A stretch of 64,000 nucleotides of DNA, taken from the NCBI RefSeq assembly GCF_021869535.1, contig NW_026262745.1, positions 33,480,001 to 33,544,000 of the forward strand, given 5' to 3'. Below the pieces are notes generated by a model that saw only the letters and a list, made by a program, of their open reading frames with translations, was not told where the DNA came from and searched no databases. Source of the stretch: Mytilus californianus. Taxonomy: Eukaryota. Positions 1,969-27,350 of the stretch are shown piece by piece. The position numbers and the translations under genes are program-made. Position 1 is the stretch's first letter. Each line of letters begins with the position of its first letter.

Positions 1969-4900
1969 CAATATCTCTATTATTTTGTATATCATAATTA
2001 TGAAGCAATAAATATTATGTAACCTATTATTCTACATATTCTAATACTTTTATTGATTACTTTTAGTACTTCTTTCTATACTGTTAATAAAATGATGATA
2101 AATATTTCAATTGCATGTATTTTAACCTGTATTTGTATGTGTTAACAAAATATCTTGAAGACGCGCCGGGGTTCGTGTCCTCAATGTGAAGAGATGGTTT
2201 TCTAAATAAATATCTAATACATGTATGTATATTAATCAATGTAAGTGGTTTAAAAGATAAACATATGATATTTTGATAAATGAAGTCGATTGTAAAGTTA
2301 AAGCTAGAAGAGTACTAAGGTAATCAAACATATTTTGATTGAGAGAAGGCACTATTAGTACTTATTCAATATTGGTGACAGTTCGTTCGTTTGAACATAG
2401 GCGATACAACAGGCTTGTAGAGACAAAAGTTAACTAATCCAATTAAATTTGTATGCCAATGGTTTTAAAGCTACCGTATCTTTGGCTAAATGGAACAATA
2501 ATTAAAACATTTTAGGAGCTTTTAAAACTATTTCAGAGATCAATTTCGATGAATAGATAGAGTTGTTAATACAGAAGAAAAATCTCAAATCAAATATAAA
2601 TACTTCCCCACAATTCTTAATTAATTCTCGACGCTTTTGCATTCAAAGTTAAAGTAAGTTATATTTTCTTGGTTGTAATTTGACAAGATTAAATTGGAAA
2701 ACAAAACAAACCGACTTCAAAACAAGGATAAGTTATGTTAACAAAATTCGGGAATAGACCAATAGAACGACTGTTACTAATTTTCGTGTGCACAAAAAAA
2801 AATTGAATAACCAATGGAAAAAAAATTGTTTATTTTTACGTACTAAGTGTCAAAATCTTCTATTCACAAAACACACACTGCCTAATGGGCATCTTTCCTA
2901 TGAGAAAAAATAAGTATCTAATAAGAATAAGAAAATAAAACTGCGTAGAAAAAGTCGTGATTACTTTCTATGCAAAACCGGAACGAATTATGTATCTCTG
3001 TCTTATATCTTTAGCACTGCTTTAATTTTTTTCTTTGTTTATTTGTTATATTAATTGCCCTGGGAATTAAAAAAAAACAGATATACTTTGATTCATGTGT
3101 ACTGTTACTGAAATATTATAAAAAGGGAAATAAGAAATAATAAAATCAGAAATCCTAAAGCCTTTGGATACATTTATTAAGGTAAGTGATTGAATACACA
3201 AAATAGAGGAATCTCTTTTTTTTTTTTTTTACATTTTACAATTAATAAACATAAATCAATGATATTCGTCCAATTATGTTTATTATCATTTTTGTTTATT
3301 TGTTTATTTATATATTTATATAGTGTTTCTTCAGTAATGTACATAATTATATATTTGAAATAAACTTAACATAAGAATATACACAAATGTTAAAAGTCTA
3401 GCGCTTTCATCCTTCATGGGACTTATCAACGTCTTTTAACATTTGTGTTTATTTTTATATTAATTCACATATAAACGAACGCACAGGGAACACTTGTGTA
3501 CAAAAGTTTTTTTTTTAAATCAACATAGATTGAAATAGTACCAGACGCAAGCGGTCGTCACCGAATCAAAGAAAAGGCTATACAATTGCTATTCTACATA
3601 TTACCTTATAACTGCATGCTACACGCGGGCCTCGTTCAAAATAATGTTTCTCAAACTAAACCCAGAGAACACAAACACTCTTGTTATTTCATTTAAGGTA
3701 CAAAATTGGTAATCTGATATTATTTCAAATTTCATTTTTTTACGGCTGTATCATCGTTTTTTCATCAAACGAGGAAATTATCTCTGATAAACAGCATGTA
3801 TAATGTACAATTCAAAAGAAATGGTTTGATTTAAGCTAGCAACCTTAAACAGAAAGCCTTTTAATTAATAACAGACAACAAAAACTCATCAAAGATACCA
3901 AGCTTATACTTGTGCAGGCCTGACGCTCGTTCGTCTACTCAACAGTGATGCTAGTTTAAAAAACAGTTGGAAGGTCAAATTAAATACTAAGTTAAATAGT
4001 ATTCAAAACCGAAAATTCCAAAAAGTTGTGCCAAAGCCAAGGCAATATATCTGGGGGAAGAAATACCTTAATGTCTAGGAGAATTCAACATTTTATAAAT
4101 AGTAAGTTTACAGAAAAATGTAACACAAATGAAAAAATCAAAAACAAAATAACATTGTTTTATTACTGCTCTTCGCGCATCTCAAAGTCCAAGTGAGGCC
4201 TTCGACATAGAGAAAAACTCTAACCTCACTGCAAGTTCAAGACTGACCCTACCAACGGTTTATTATACATGTTTTTGAGCGCTTAACCCTTCCCAATACA
4301 TGGAAAATGTTCTTATCGTACAGTTATACAGACTGTAAAAATCAGTTGATATTGACATCGGATCGTTACCAAGCAACAACAAAAAACAACAAACAAAATG
4401 ATATAAAACACAGAGCTCTATGTTTTGTCTTCCTCTTTCATCTTCTCAAGAGTATTCCATATTTTTATTACCGTGTACCGTGTACAGCTTACTATATTGT
4501 GTTTTGCCTTTTTTTTACTACCGAAGGCCCTTTAGTAAGCTGTTAATCTGAGATATCTATTTTCGTCCTTTGTTTTTGAATAGAATGGTTGACTATTTTT
4601 GAATTATACAACACATTCTCATTTTTACTTCGTATAAATGAATAAATGAATAAATGAAGCAATCATGATTGGACAATACAAATACACTTTCTTCAAAAAA
4701 TTTAAGATAGTCATTCAAAAAATAAGAAGTTCTTTACGTATAGATTTCAACAACAGCGGGAAATAAGCGAAAAGTATATTTTAACCAAAGTTTCCCTAAC
4801 AAGAAAGAAATTGATGGATTTTCCCCCGAATTCATTTAATTTGACTTTGCACCTAGAAACATGCACACTTAAACACTAACAACTGCTATTTAACTTCATA

Positions 4901-22729: not shown

Positions 22730-23640
22730 AAGCTTCCCGTTAAAGATATAGATATCAAGATCCAGGAAAGAGCAGTGTTCATTGTTAGTATCAGCTTTAT
22801 TTAAAGTCAGTTCAGCAGGATAAATCTCTTTAGTGTACATACTGAAGTCGTCATTATTGAGAGCCAATATATCATCCAAATATCTTAAAGTGTTATTAAA
22901 TTTTTGTATCAGATGTTGTTTCGATCGGTAAAAATTCAGTTAATGCATATATCTTTGTGACTGAATAGAAATTTTTCTCCGTTAGGAACTAGCGGGGCGC
23001 CTTGACCGCCAAGTGCAACATCTTTATTACCAAAGTTACATACAAACGGATATTTCAAATGCACAGCAGTTGTCTCCCCATCTCCGAGCTGGAATGTATA
23101 TCCCAAAAGTGCAGTTATCGTATCAAAGCAGGGCCAATTGACATAGATCTATTGTTTGTTGTTACTAAAAAAAGACCCAAAAGAGTTTGAAGATATATAT
23201 TCGCATTCTGACTTTTTAAATGCCCATTGAATTAGGTATGTGAATTTTTTCTTAATGAGATTATGAGGCAAAGTGGTATATAGGTAGGAAAATCAAAACG
23301 TTGAACAAATTAGAAATCATCAATATGAGCATGCAACTTATCAAGTACTTCCAACGAATTTTTGACACTCCAAAAGTAATTAATTCCACTATTTTCAAAG
23401 GTCTTATTTGAACATTTTATTAGACCATTTTATTGTGAAACTGTTGAAGACTGAAAACATCTTGTTCAGTCCTAGATTGTTTCTGACTGCTGTCGCTCTA
23501 CATGCAGTAAATTAAAGTATGTTTATGTTTCCTGACAAGCTTGCATTGCAATTTAAATTTCGTAGTAATGCAAGCTGTCTCTATTTGCATGTCTGTTTAG
23601 TTATGCAGGATATTGTCTGTATTTTGTTGTAATAACCAGA
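22730..23640 (-). mobile_element. Degenerate Penelope-like reverse transcriptase fragment
   Basis: Minus strand reads ..NYFWSVKNSLEVLDKL..FDF/LYTTLPHNLIKKKF..CFDTITAL [anmK insert] ..SKQHLIQKFNNTLRYLDDILALNNDDF..EIYPAELTLNKA..FLDLDI. The YLDD catalytic motif is present, with stops and a frameshift. Confidence 0.85.
22940..23107 (-). pseudogene. Identical 168-bp copy of anmK exon 1 (25940..26107) inserted in a dead RT
   Basis: Base-by-base identity of 22940-23107 with 25940-26107, same orientation, offset exactly 3000 bp. It encodes the GYTFQLGDGETT...GGQGAPLVPNGEKFLFSHKDICI part. Confidence 0.95.
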
Positions 23641-24225
23641 TAAAGAGCTCACCATAACTGTTACTTACAAATCGAAATACATGTTTTCTTACTTATTTTC
23701 TAACACGACGAGTGTCAGTAGTGAAGCAGGAACTGTTATCCTTCCGGAGCACCTGAGTCACCAATGTTTTTGGTGGGATTCGTGTTGCTCAGTATTTAGC
23801 TTTCTATGTAATATTTGTTATTATTCAATATGTTTATCCTTTCGTCGTTTTACTTGTTGCCATGGTATTGTCTTTTTTATTTGACTATTTTTTCCGAATG
23901 ATCCCCTTGATATCTTCTCTCTTGTTTAATCGTTTATGAAAAGTACACAATTCCTGTATTTCAATAATGTTCTTCCAAGTAAACTATGCTTTAAACATTC
24001 TGCATTTTCAAACGTTTCGAATAGTTCAATGCTTTTATAATATATAACAATAAATTTTAAATATTTTTTACAGTCGTTTTGGCAAGTAAAACCAAGAGAG
24101 ATACCTTTGCTAGAATATGCTTTGTATATAAGAGTAAACAGTTTGAATGTCGGTTAATATCTTTGCAGTAGTTCGTATCAATAATCCGTCCTCGGTACCA
24201 GATGCCCCTTTTTTCCCAAACATTT

Positions 24226-26427
24226 TTAGCTTGAGCAAAGTGATGATGATGAATCTGTGCGTTGTTTGTTTTTCTCCATCAAAAATCGAATTATTCTCGT
24301 AACGGAACTACTTGAATGAACTGGACGGTGAATGCTACCGGATATTGAATCAAACCTACTTCCCGTAACAGATGCCATAATGTTTTCTTGATTCAACAAA
24401 CAACGAAGTCCGAGAAAAGCGAATATCAACGCTTCTTTAAACACAATTGTGTCACTGTCAGCGATCTCAATGTCAAACCCCTCATTCAGTAACTTAGATT
24501 TAAATAACTTAATCAAATGTGTATTAAAAGATCCACCTCCAGAAACCAGAATTTTAATTACGCTATTTTGCTTGGACACATTTCCCGCATTCAACATGTT
24601 TCGTCCATCCTTGCAGGCATCTGCCAACCTGTTTGCAACGTGTTCAGCAAATGCTCTTAATAGATCAGGAATTTGGTATTTACCAGTCTGGAAAATAAAA
24701 TTCAACCGTTATTATTTTCCGTCTAAAATATATGATGGGTTATTAACGCATAGTATAAACTAATTCTTATTGAGTAATTGATTCCCATTATGTAATTCCT
24801 TGTCAAATAAGCGGCCATTGCCAGGCACCAGGACCATTGTAGGTTATTGCATCACTTTGCGTTCGTCGTCCATTATTTTTGTCATCTTCATTAAAACTGC
24901 CGGTTCAAGTTTAAAATAATTTTAAACTTTATCATAATCATTTGTGACTTGTGGTGTTCAAAATTATATATTTTCCCTAAGTATATGCCAACTTATCAGC
25001 AAGGTCATTGCTGCTGTAAATAGAATATAGGGTGATAATTCGTTTAAGCCAATCTGATCATTTTTTTTCAGTGTTCTGTTTCTAATGTGGCATTCAGTTG
25101 TGGGATTTAGTTCTTCCGTAGTCATCTTTTAAAACTTTCTCAAAATGATCTAAAATGTCCAAGTAAATAATTCCCGTTATCTAAATAAAAAGAGCAGTTT
25201 TTGGTTACAATGATGTTAAATTAGGTGACTCAAATATACATTCATTAGACAAAACCTTACTGTTTATAGATACAACGTATACAACGTACAAATGTACTTC
25301 ATTCTTTTGACCACGTACACAGAAATAATATCTAATCCGTACACTTGAACTTAAAGGTTTGAAGTTGTTTACAAAATTAATTCAACCGGTATTAAAAAGG
25401 ACAAAAATACACCATTTAAAATATTCTACATATTCATTTTTGATACATTGCTACACACAAATTAGCAACAAACAGGATTTTCATGACATACTTTTGTAGT
25501 TTAGATTACAGTATAAATATTTTGAAACATTGATTTTTCAAGTTGAAAGTGTGATATATAAGGGCATTGGACTGTAGGTTAAAATAGGTCAATGTCATTG
25601 CACATGTTTTGGATGAATCAACAACAATAAATACAATAACTAGGAAAAAGTAATGAAAAGTAATTAGTTGAGCTTAAACTTACATCAAGTAATGGAAGCA
25701 CACTATTTTCAATCTTTTCCGATTCCATTGACTTTGGTGGGAGTTGTTTGTAGTAGTCTAGCCCTTCTAACTGACATAAGACATCGTCTATTACTTTCCC
25801 AGTCCGTGCTATGTCGCCTTCTGGGTCATACTCCAGTTTAGAGTCGTGTAGATTAGCCAGCATGTTTGAAACATAATTACATGGACATACATCATACCCT
25901 TGAAGTCCTCTAAGACCAATGTTAGCTATCCCACTCAAATTAATGCATATATCTTTGTGACTGAATAGAAATTTTTCTCCGTTAGGAACTAGCGGGGCGC
26001 CTTGACCGCCAAGTGCAACATCTTTATTACCAAAGTTACATACAAACGGATATTTCAAATGCACAGCAGTTGTCTCCCCATCTCCGAGCTGGAATGTATA
26101 TCCCAAATTTGGCTGATGGAAAACAGTATGCCCATGAGCCGCTACAAAATCCAAATTGCTAATTCCTTCAGTTTGAATGAATTCGTCAATCGTTTGTCCT
26201 ACAAAATGTCCATACTCCACGTGAAGCCGAATAAGCTGCTCCCCGCTAAGCTGGCATGCTGTTCGAAGTAAACCTTGCCATTCCGGGGTGTATGGAATAG
26301 TTGTGGCTTTCATTATTCTGTATCCCCATATGTCCGTTTGCACGTCACCTGTAAATTCGACGTGACATAAGTCCAAACCATCCAAAGAAGGTCCTGATGT
26401 ACAACCTATTCCGGAAAATGATGCCAT
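24226..26427 (-). CDS. anmK: Anhydro-N-acetylmuramic acid kinase-like (AnmK/levoglucosan kinase family): complement(join(24226..24687,25684..26427)), 401 aa
   Basis: AnmK motifs SG(P)SLDGLD, HGHTVFHQP, QLGDG, KDVALGGQGAPLVP, NL(S)GIANI, YDVCPCN, YDPEG, PPKS, VSGGGSFN and KEALIFAFLG. The phase-0 intron has donor GAT|gtaagt (25683) and acceptor ttttccag|ACT (24688), joining the two ORFs in frame. Confidence 0.92.
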
Positions 26428-26997
26428 ATTTTAAAAGATTTCACGACGATTAAAACTTAATTAATTTATCTCAGTTTGTTTCATTCATCGGAAATAGAAA
26501 CGTCAATCTGTTTCTTGTGTGTTATCACCTTCCTGACTAAATGTAAACAACTTGTGCTCTATTAATTTTCTTATCTAATGATTACAGTTTATCCCTCATC
26601 TCTCAGGTAAACATCTATCCACATGTACTGTACAACTGCACTGTTAAAAAATAACTTTTATGAATCAATATTGTTCCCCAGCTGACAAAACACTTTTTTT
26701 AACGACGGTAATTTTTCTAGATATTCAACCTTCACCCCAAAAAACTGTTGAATTAATCATCTTCGTCCTTGGCTATTTGAAATACGATAATCCTTGGAAA
26801 GAGTGGTCGCATAGTGCTTACAATTGCAGAATATGATATTTGTCACACTCTGAATTATGAATGCTATCTAGCTACTCGCCTTCAAAATAGAAAAATCGTT
26901 ACGAAAATGTTTCATTTCTTCTTTTCACTATTTCAATTGATTTACAAAATTATGTATTACAAAATTGATATATATATTATGTTACTTCAATGCACAA

Positions 26998-27350
26998 ATG
27001 AGTCTTGTTTGTTTGTTATTAACATGCAATGCGAAAACACTGCATTCGTGTTCATAACTACTCTTACAAGGATACCTCCTTTATGTATATAGCCACCACT
27101 TTACAAGGCCTTGAATTTAGTGTTATGATTATCATCTACGCAAAACAGGAATTCTGTATTAAAATGTGTACATATGAGTCTTGTTTGTTTGTTATTAACA
27201 TGCAATGCGAAAACACTGCATTCGTGTTCATAACTACTCTTACAAGGATACCTCCTTTATGTATATAGCCACCACTTTACAAGGCCTTGAATTTAGTGTT
27301 ATGATTATCATCTACGCAAAACAGGAATTCTGTATTAAAAATGTGTACAT
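26998..27350. repeat. Near-perfect 176-bp tandem duplication
   Basis: 26998-27173 and 27174-27350 are identical except for one extra A in a homopolymer. Confidence 0.95.

Follow-up and report, generated by a model that had tools for sequence, protein, structure and literature searches.

Why does a mussel carry a gene for AnmK, a kinase of bacterial cell-wall recycling, and what might such an enzyme do in an animal? The question is raised by a minus-strand gene in a 64,000-nucleotide stretch of the Mytilus californianus genome (C165:33480001-33544000; here, the window), which had been noticed from the sequence alone. Our reading, to which we give a probability of about 80%, is that a Bacteroidota-type anmK gene was acquired in one ancient transfer by the ancestor of molluscs and annelids, that it was later duplicated in mytilids, and that the derived window copy is a working kinase with shifted substrate preference or kinetics. 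The reading builds on the gene structure, splicing, expression, tree placement, residue states, selection and orthologue fold observed here; enzymatic activity, substrate and the link to an etherase are what we infer from them.

An animal AnmK gene and its bacterial relatives

We confirmed the AnmK-family gene to the base, with two exons that together encode 401 amino acids (Table 1). The intron opens with a GTAAGT donor (GT at 25683-25682) and ends in a pyrimidine-rich tract and the acceptor AG at 24689-24688. One raw stranded RNA sequencing (RNA-seq) run and the contigs of three other runs were aligned to positions 23700-27000. RNA depth was ~300x over the exons and 0-27x over the intron. 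The joint 24687->25684, which skips 996 nt and reads CT..AC on the plus strand (GT..AG on the minus strand), was crossed by 250 reads with 80 start points, and the same joint was present in the contigs of all three other runs. All first mates lay on the plus strand, the orientation that a standard stranded library gives for an mRNA of the minus strand. Since 3707 of 10.3 M RNA records fell on this ~1.8-kb transcript, the gene is strongly expressed; the majority of the expressed polymorphisms are synonymous. Use of the minor alternative acceptor keeps the distal half of the intron and would add 28 residues after exon 1 and then a stop. No splice joint upstream of the coding region was seen in the RNA reads over the aligned interval. 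These data bear out the original prediction of a full-length AnmK ORF (open reading frame) with one canonical phase-0 intron, as do the family profiles described below; the gene is both expressed and spliced, contrary to an outcome that the prediction had named as refuting.

The window belongs to a 1.65-Gb assembly of 175 contigs, and the gene is located well within a contig whose length is 33.5 Mb or more. GC content at third codon positions (GC3) is 0.33-0.34 in the exons, close to the GC content of the genome region (0.32), compared with a GC3 of 0.55-0.76 in the nearest bacterial kin, whose genes sit in dense, operon-like contexts. The gene is thus a genuine mussel nuclear gene: chromosomally integrated, spliced, transcribed and of host-like composition.

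Both exons belong to one AnmK protein. Against Pfam PF03702 (AnmK; gathering score 24 bits), exon 1 scored 119.3 bits (E 2.7e-34, model positions 4-243) and exon 2 26.4 bits (E 4.7e-6, model positions 285-365), in collinear order. The two exons abut on NCBIfam NF007144, where the match to exon 1 stops at model position 249 and that to exon 2 resumes at 253; apart from the intron, the AnmK is thus continuous. The exons scored 266 and 76.7 bits on this model (sum ~343), compared with 386 for the canonical mussel paralogue described below, 385 for the Capitella protein and 381, 403 and 354 for the bacterial relatives P0084, P0123 and P0427. The curated cut-off of 436 bits was reached by neither the window exons, the paralogue, the Capitella protein nor the bacterial kin. 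NF007144, a Bacteroidota-type model, is the best-fitting NCBIfam model for the group, without an equivalog-level match; the best model for E. coli AnmK is a different one, NF007138. Exon 1 encodes the motifs GCTSGPSLDG (the N-terminal ATP loop), HGHT, NFGNKD, GGQGAPLVP, GIAN and YDVCPCN with the catalytic Asp, and exon 2 encodes GGG..N and KEALIFAFLG, which holds the Glu326 equivalent.

Full-length analyses (fold and annotated junction) were performed on the public M. edulis protein P0001, which is 97% identical to the window product over exon 1 and ~91% over exon 2 and has the same annotated junction; trees used P0001 or exon 1 alone. The AlphaFold2 model of P0001 was of high confidence (predicted local distance difference test, pLDDT, 94.2; predicted template modelling score 0.92). 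In Foldseek, it matched the bacterial AnmKs 3qbx_A (query/target template modelling (TM) score 0.78/0.88) and 3cqy (0.75/0.81), and levoglucosan kinase with a query TM of 0.77. Judged by this model of its orthologue, the window gene product is a two-domain ASKHA-fold protein of the AnmK family. Among Protein Data Bank (PDB) sequences it was closer to AnmK (3cqy, E 2e-26) than to levoglucosan kinase (4zxz, E 4.7e-20), and its nearest database relatives were all AnmK-type. At the end of exon 2, an extension of ~30 residues (24226-24320), not found in bacterial AnmKs, is predicted to be helical (pLDDT ~73-85 for P0001 residues 379-396). It contains IIRFLMEKNK followed by a Ser-rich tail and is mollusc-specific: bivalves and Haliotis conserve it, whereas bacteria and Capitella lack it.

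When exon 1 was used as the query of a word-index search, orthologues were identified in bivalves (Mytilus, Pinctada, Mizuhopecten, Saccostrea, Tegillarca, Mercenaria and unionids), in gastropods (Haliotis, Patella, Lottia, Gigantopelta, Littorina, Biomphalaria, Lymnaea and Aplysia), in land snails and slugs (Arion, Candidula and Bradybaena) and in the annelids Owenia and Capitella. With the Owenia protein as query, Lamellibrachia, a gutless tubeworm, was also recovered, bringing the annelid families to three. Other animal phyla did not appear among the named matches of three word searches, in which the best 120 were listed and most were without a name. In the exon 1 search, bacterial proteins followed the animals at 42-49% identity. 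The same ordering was seen among the 6436 matches from a representative search of 1.84 billion proteins, of which the few checked were bacteria, one land snail or sequences without a name. The named bacterial neighbours were metagenome-assembled genomes (MAGs) of Bacteroidia or Bacteroidota, Pontibacter, Aureibacter, Flammeovirgaceae, Flavobacteriaceae, Chryseobacterium, Saprospiraceae and Bacteroidales, joined by one Opitutales (Verrucomicrobiota) MAG and one Hyphomicrobiales MAG. A scan of genome contigs with P0084, biased by that query, returned Bacteroidota only.

We built three trees: a FastTree phylogeny of 236 rows with E. coli AnmK as outgroup, a careful IQ-TREE analysis of 75 rows (LG+G4) and a quick IQ-TREE analysis of 106 rows. 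All three recovered a single animal clade, with support of 96 in FastTree, 99/98 in the careful tree (ultrafast bootstrap/SH-aLRT, a likelihood-ratio branch test) and 93 in the quick tree. Within it, Mollusca were monophyletic (99, 100/99 and 100, respectively), the molluscan topology roughly matched the species tree and the annelids branched at the base. The animal clade was nested among bacterial sequences and contained none. Animals grouped with mostly uncultured Bacteroidota-type sequences including P0084 (96 in FastTree; 87/99 for a 40-row clade in the careful tree), and the Opitutales MAG fell in the same neighbourhood. 'Classical' Flavobacteriia and Bacteroidales AnmKs branched apart with a support of 99. 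The immediate sister of the animals in the 106-row tree was the metagenomic protein P0137, a cluster-mate of which adjoins a sodium:solute symporter gene in a bacterial contig. These relationships support, from the sequences, a Bacteroidota-type bacterium as the donor, placed no more finely than that. The horizontal acquisition and Bacteroidota kinship proposed in the original prediction are supported by this placement, and the homologues that it thought might be annotated in other bivalves exist and are already annotated in public proteomes. Its suggestion of a link to filter feeding did not hold, since the gene is vertically inherited across bivalves, marine, freshwater and land gastropods, and annelids including Lamellibrachia; nor was the transfer recent.

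Table 1. Coordinates of the window AnmK gene (positions within the window) and of related genes elsewhere in the assembly.
Feature	Location	Strand	Details
Coding exon 1	26427..25684	minus	248 codons, ATG at 26427
Intron	25683..24688	minus	phase 0, GT-AG, spliceosomal, 996 nt, GC 0.30
Coding exon 2	24687..24226	minus	153 codons + TAA (24226-24228)
5′ untranslated region (UTR)	26428..26700, limits approximate	minus	RNA depth falls from ~290 to ~44 between 26475 and 26696
3′ UTR	23900..24225, limits approximate	minus	RNA depth falls from ~320 to ~90 near 24140, tail towards 23900
Minor alternative acceptor 25180	retained part 24688..25180	minus	7 reads vs 250 for the main junction
Second AnmK gene, canonical active site	G000:C88:62146775-62148689 (loci L001, L004)		two exons; GCMSGSS, NFRNKD, INLGGIAN
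GKRP-type gene	G000:C1:101693079-101707564 (loci L005, L030, L032, L042)	minus	multi-exon; two collinear MurQ-like SIS repeats + GKRP-like_C

Near the gene, positions 22940-23107 hold a 168-nt duplicate of the exon 1 stretch 25940-26107, 100% identical and exactly 3000 nt away. A contig from an independent run (X5) departs from the gene at 26107 and goes on with 29 letters found after 23107; because it crosses the edge of the fragment, the junction between fragment and flank exists outside this assembly.

The active site of the window copy

The mussel genome encodes a second AnmK, on contig C88, which is ~87-90% identical to M. galloprovincialis P0005. In the careful tree, this paralogue type (P0005) and the window-type lineage (P0001-P0004) are sisters within the bivalves (98/95), and the duplication is therefore mytilid-specific. 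The window copy is the derived member of the pair, a point that the original prediction had missed. With numbering as in P. aeruginosa AnmK, and residue roles from a preprint that summarises the P. aeruginosa structures (bioRxiv 10.64898/2026.03.13.711553), the window gene retains Ser12, Asp14, Thr97, Asn168, Asp182, Asn187 and Glu326. It has Gly in place of Arg129 (NFGNKD), the residue that coordinates the D-lactyl carboxylate of anhMurNAc, the 1,6-anhydro form of N-acetylmuramic acid (bioRxiv 10.64898/2026.03.13.711553). Its ATP loop reads G-C-T-S-G-P-S-L-D-G against a consensus of G-x-M-S-G-T/S-S-L-D-G, i.e. Met8Thr and Thr11Pro. All three positions are nearly invariant: Arg129 is present in 393 of 394 aligned relatives, Met8 in 388 of 390, and Thr or Ser at position 11 in 389 of 390.

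At these positions, the canonical residues are found in the C88 copy and in almost every other animal homologue; the few exceptions belong to the window-type lineage, Nucella and Aplysia. The loop changes at positions 8 and 11 are common to the whole window-type lineage, within which Arg129 was lost only in the window gene and M. edulis P0001 (both Gly) and in P0002 (Pro). Other animal homologues without Arg129 are Aplysia P0064 (Val) and the fragment P0082. Comparison of the window and M. edulis genes, exon by exon with pooled counts, gave a dS of 0.35, a dN of 0.028 and an omega of 0.079, indicating strong purifying selection despite the active-site changes.

How would such an enzyme work? 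In members of the AnmK family, ATP and Mg (Asp14, Ser12, Glu326) together with Asp182 would serve to break the 1,6-anhydro ring open and to transfer phosphate to O6. The window copy keeps this catalytic machinery, has lost the Arg that clamps the lactyl carboxylate and has an altered mobile ATP loop. With Arg129 and two ATP-loop residues replaced, phosphorylation of anhMurNAc cannot be assumed for this copy. We think that the copy still functions as a kinase, and that its preferred substrate or its kinetics may have moved away from free anhMurNAc, a proposal that follows from the retained catalytic residues, the lost Arg129, the high expression and the purifying selection.

The same substitutions could have made the window copy a dead or regulatory pseudoenzyme, e.g. 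a muropeptide or nucleotide binder, leaving AnmK chemistry to the C88 paralogue alone. Arg129Gly, Met8Thr and Thr11Pro all hit near-invariant positions, the NF007144 score of the window exons is below that of the canonical paralogue (~343 vs 386 bits), and similar erosion is found in other animal homologues (P0138 and Nucella). Against this, all seven of the catalytic and ligand residues listed above are in place, omega is 0.08 and expression is very high, and levoglucosan kinase performs the same chemistry on a substrate that has no carboxylate. We consider a pseudoenzyme rather unlikely.

Erosion elsewhere in the clade takes various forms. P0138, a 456-aa protein from a Logan transcript contig, is without Asp182, Asn168 and Asp14, and Nucella P0080 has an independent TSGPS loop together with Asn168His. 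Relaxation or change of function may thus recur across the animal AnmK clade.

We also weighed an enzyme that resembles levoglucosan kinase and acts on non-muramyl anhydro sugars (levoglucosan or 1,6-anhydro-N-acetylglucosamine) instead of anhMurNAc. Loss of the carboxylate-binding Arg removes a MurNAc-specific contact, and levoglucosan kinase structures are among the best fold matches. However, levoglucosan kinase itself keeps an Arg here (DFRISD in the alignment), so the loss is no signature of that enzyme, and the sequence is closer to AnmK (2e-26 vs 5e-20). Nor are we aware of any levoglucosan that a marine mussel would meet in nature. Such an enzyme is unlikely in our view, and a kinase of AnmK type with shifted specificity remains our preferred reading.

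Number and age of transfers

Splice sites in Haliotis and three annelids were located by exact splice mapping. In Haliotis, exon 1 has 247 codons and ends in phase 0 at the same alignment column as in Mytilus (LLD|), so the proposed check on intron conservation across molluscs was positive for these two genera. Exon 1 has 259 codons in Capitella, 248 in Owenia and 249 in Lamellibrachia, which has a second intron further along; all three end in phase 0. Relative to the molluscan site, the annelid sites are shifted 1-2 codons downstream and stay within the same loop, the length of which differs between species. About 20 database ORFs of 246-265 residues stop just past the intron point, an outcome that gene callers would be expected to give on meeting the same intron. 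Intron length differs between the window gene (996 nt) and its M. edulis counterpart (L033; 1166 nt). An intronless 375-aa member of the animal clade was found in an ENA contig (L029; ctg12503, gene 3417-4544), which could represent a retrocopy or a lineage that lost the intron; the contig is gene-poor and eukaryote-like, and carries an exon fragment of a tyrosine/serine-threonine kinase.

A single animal clade with phase-0 introns in the same loop points to one transfer and one intron gain before the split of molluscs and annelids, which dates to the Cambrian or earlier. On this reading, a Bacteroidota-type anmK would have been transferred once, before that split, and would since have gained one phase-0 intron, taken on host-like base composition and been inherited vertically.

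Alternatively, molluscs and annelids could have acquired anmK separately from closely related bacteria. The intron offset between the two phyla and the intronless copy would fit such a history, the annelids branch as a basal grade of unsettled order within the animals, and ticks and rotifers have been reported as independent recipients of Bacteroidota anmK, i.e. the gene transfers readily. Yet the animal clade is single and supported in every tree (99/98, 96 and 93), no bacterial sequence falls within it, and every intron examined is in phase 0 in the same short, indel-prone loop. We judge two acquisitions improbable, at a level similar to the levoglucosan kinase-like enzyme.

An old, vertically inherited eukaryotic gene, lost from most lineages and never transferred, is very unlikely. 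Fungal levoglucosan kinases and some AnmK-like genes of protists exist, and the animal clade is old and well behaved. However, the animal proteins are 42-49% identical to Bacteroidota-type AnmKs, NF007144 is the best model for animals and bacterial kin alike, with similar scores, and fungal levoglucosan kinase is a far weaker match. The named top matches of the three word searches (best 120 listed) were only molluscs, annelids and bacteria, and the tick preprint terms anmK 'normally absent in Eukaryota' (bioRxiv 10.64898/2026.03.13.711553). Finally, bacterial contamination or an assembly artefact has next to no probability, as the original prediction had argued from the gene's embedding in host sequence: the gene lies 33.5 Mb into a chromosome-scale contig, its spliceosomal intron is removed in RNA of several independent runs, its composition is host-like and orthologues occur in dozens of independently assembled animal genomes.

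Several points weigh against our reading of one transfer, one mytilid duplication and a still-active window copy. The intron positions are 1-2 codons apart between the two phyla, and one animal-like copy has no intron. Uncertainty also attaches to the deep branches and to the root, given the long E. coli outgroup branch and a bootstrap in the careful tree that had not fully settled. The bacterial sister group is almost wholly metagenomic and its branching order weakly resolved, and absence from other animal phyla is read from named top matches. The selection estimate assumes strict orthology of P0001, and a dS of 0.35 is high for congeners, reflecting either distant Mytilus species or genes that are not strict orthologues. 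For function, Gly129 and Pro11 make a loss of kinase activity possible. Moreover, the tick enzyme, with these residues kept, is already ~500-fold slower than E. coli AnmK, and the tick homologue is the only animal AnmK for which ATP-dependent conversion of anhMurNAc to N-acetylmuramic acid 6-phosphate (MurNAc-6-phosphate) has been shown (bioRxiv 10.64898/2026.03.13.711553).

Pathway partners and known systems

If the animal kinases retain the family activity, they would convert anhMurNAc from bacterial cell-wall fragments to MurNAc-6-phosphate, and an animal etherase of the GKRP/MurQ type would turn this product into N-acetylglucosamine 6-phosphate (GlcNAc-6-P) and D-lactate. The original prediction had proposed a search for partner genes in the genome, and the outcome was mixed: an etherase candidate was found, and NagZ was not. 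A GKRP-type gene on contig C1 (Table 1) is, by its domain content, the likely MurNAc-6-phosphate etherase partner. According to a 2026 preprint, GKRP is a single locus across Metazoa, and non-mammalian GKRPs act as MurNAc-6-phosphate etherases. A bacterial-type MurQ was rejected, because TIGR00274 gave one weak exon, which belongs to the GKRP-type gene. A NagZ-type GH3 enzyme was not found by a Pfam GH3 search of the genome. Two GH3 exons 20 kb apart on C57 (14494164-14494373 and 14514042-14514260; loci L039 and L040), one of which has an internal TGA, were rejected as NagZ partners, since beta-xylosidases and beta-glucosidases were the nearest relatives in the PDB. The two exons could encode digestive glycosidases whose origin is unusual for an animal.

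The closest precedent is in ticks and rotifers. anmK was transferred from Chitinophagaceae to the tick ancestor, an estimated 150-300 million years (My) ago, and independently to rotifers; the tick gene has an intron in its 5′ UTR, its product phosphorylates anhMurNAc weakly, and RNA interference against it impairs both feeding and reproduction (bioRxiv 10.64898/2026.03.13.711553). As in the mussel, an anmK of Bacteroidota origin was fixed in an animal lineage, gained an intron, is expressed and is inherited vertically. The tick enzyme likewise retains D14, T97, D182 and E326 and carries a lineage-specific active-site substitution suggesting altered specificity. The two cases differ in recipients (Mollusca and Annelida here), in age (the transfer described here is apparently older than 150-300 My), in the intron (phase 0 in the coding region of the mussel gene) and in the donor, reported as Chitinophagaceae 'clade 2' for ticks in contrast to the Pontibacter-like and Bacteroidia MAG kin of the mussel protein. 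They also differ in the residues changed: Asn168/173 became Cys in ticks; in the mussel copy Asn168 is intact, and the residues lost are Arg129 and Thr11. None of the 394 aligned relatives has a tick-like Cys in the Asn168 column. Since the tick and rotifer proteins are absent from the best matches and the relatives lack the tick-type Cys, the mollusc-annelid transfer was probably independent of those in ticks and rotifers. The tick preprint does not mention molluscs or annelids (bioRxiv 10.64898/2026.03.13.711553), and we know of no paper on AnmK in either phylum, full-text searches that paired the enzyme name with mollusc terms having returned nothing relevant.

The mussel protein shares its Pfam family, ASKHA fold, Asp182, Mg/ATP ligands and GGQGAPLVP motif with bacterial AnmKs (E. 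coli b1640; P. aeruginosa 3QBW/3QBX/8CPB; Shewanella 3CQY). It is only ~22-25% identical to these proteobacterial enzymes and belongs to the Bacteroidota-type subfamily; unlike them, it has the intron, the ~30-residue C-terminal helix, Gly129, Pro11 and Thr8. Lipomyces starkeyi levoglucosan kinase (4YH5/4ZLU) is a eukaryotic relative within the superfamily; its substrate is a 1,6-anhydro sugar, which it opens and phosphorylates, and its fold match is comparable. It is more distant in sequence (E 5e-20), longer (~440 aa) and keeps the Arg lost in the mussel copy, and nothing in the sequences suggests that the mussel gene derives from a fungal lineage. Lateral transfers of anmK and murQ are known from bacterivorous anaerobic ciliates (PMC13198582), and MurQ-type etherases from free-living protists (PMC7052976). 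These are likewise eukaryotes with acquired bacterial genes of amino-sugar catabolism, presumed to process peptidoglycan of bacteria that they ingest or live with, that pair AnmK with a MurNAc-6-phosphate etherase. Unlike the mussel, they are unicellular and acquired their genes in separate events, and the mussel etherase would be the metazoan GKRP type, with a duplicated MurQ-like fold, instead of a co-transferred murQ.

Taken further, a cytosolic route in two steps for bacterial muramic acid, from the horizontally acquired AnmK to the GKRP-type etherase, may have persisted in molluscs and annelids for more than half a billion years, with Mytilus duplicating the kinase and remodelling one highly expressed copy (Arg129Gly, Thr11Pro) for a new ligand. 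We hold this extended view only tentatively and think it more doubtful than not. If true, the route would explain the substrate supply for the still-active etherases of non-mammalian GKRPs. Candidates for the new ligand include anhydro-muropeptides such as those of the tracheal-cytotoxin type, or an anhydro sugar that bears no lactyl group, and the window copy would be a host enzyme that disarms or senses peptidoglycan fragments.

Because the gene is already annotated in public proteomes, the value of the finding is in its origin, age and altered chemistry. Bacterial anmK was recognised as a domesticated gene of animals only very recently, and the present evidence points to a second such case, apparently much older and broader than that in ticks and spanning two large phyla. 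Here the intron is conserved and lies in the coding region, and one lineage-specific duplicate has had its active site remodelled while under purifying selection. A plausible source of MurNAc-6-phosphate and a GKRP-type gene also occur together in this genome. In mussels, oysters and snails, one can thereby test directly why animals keep an active MurNAc-6-phosphate etherase and how they dispose of anhydro-muropeptides from prey, symbionts or pathogens.

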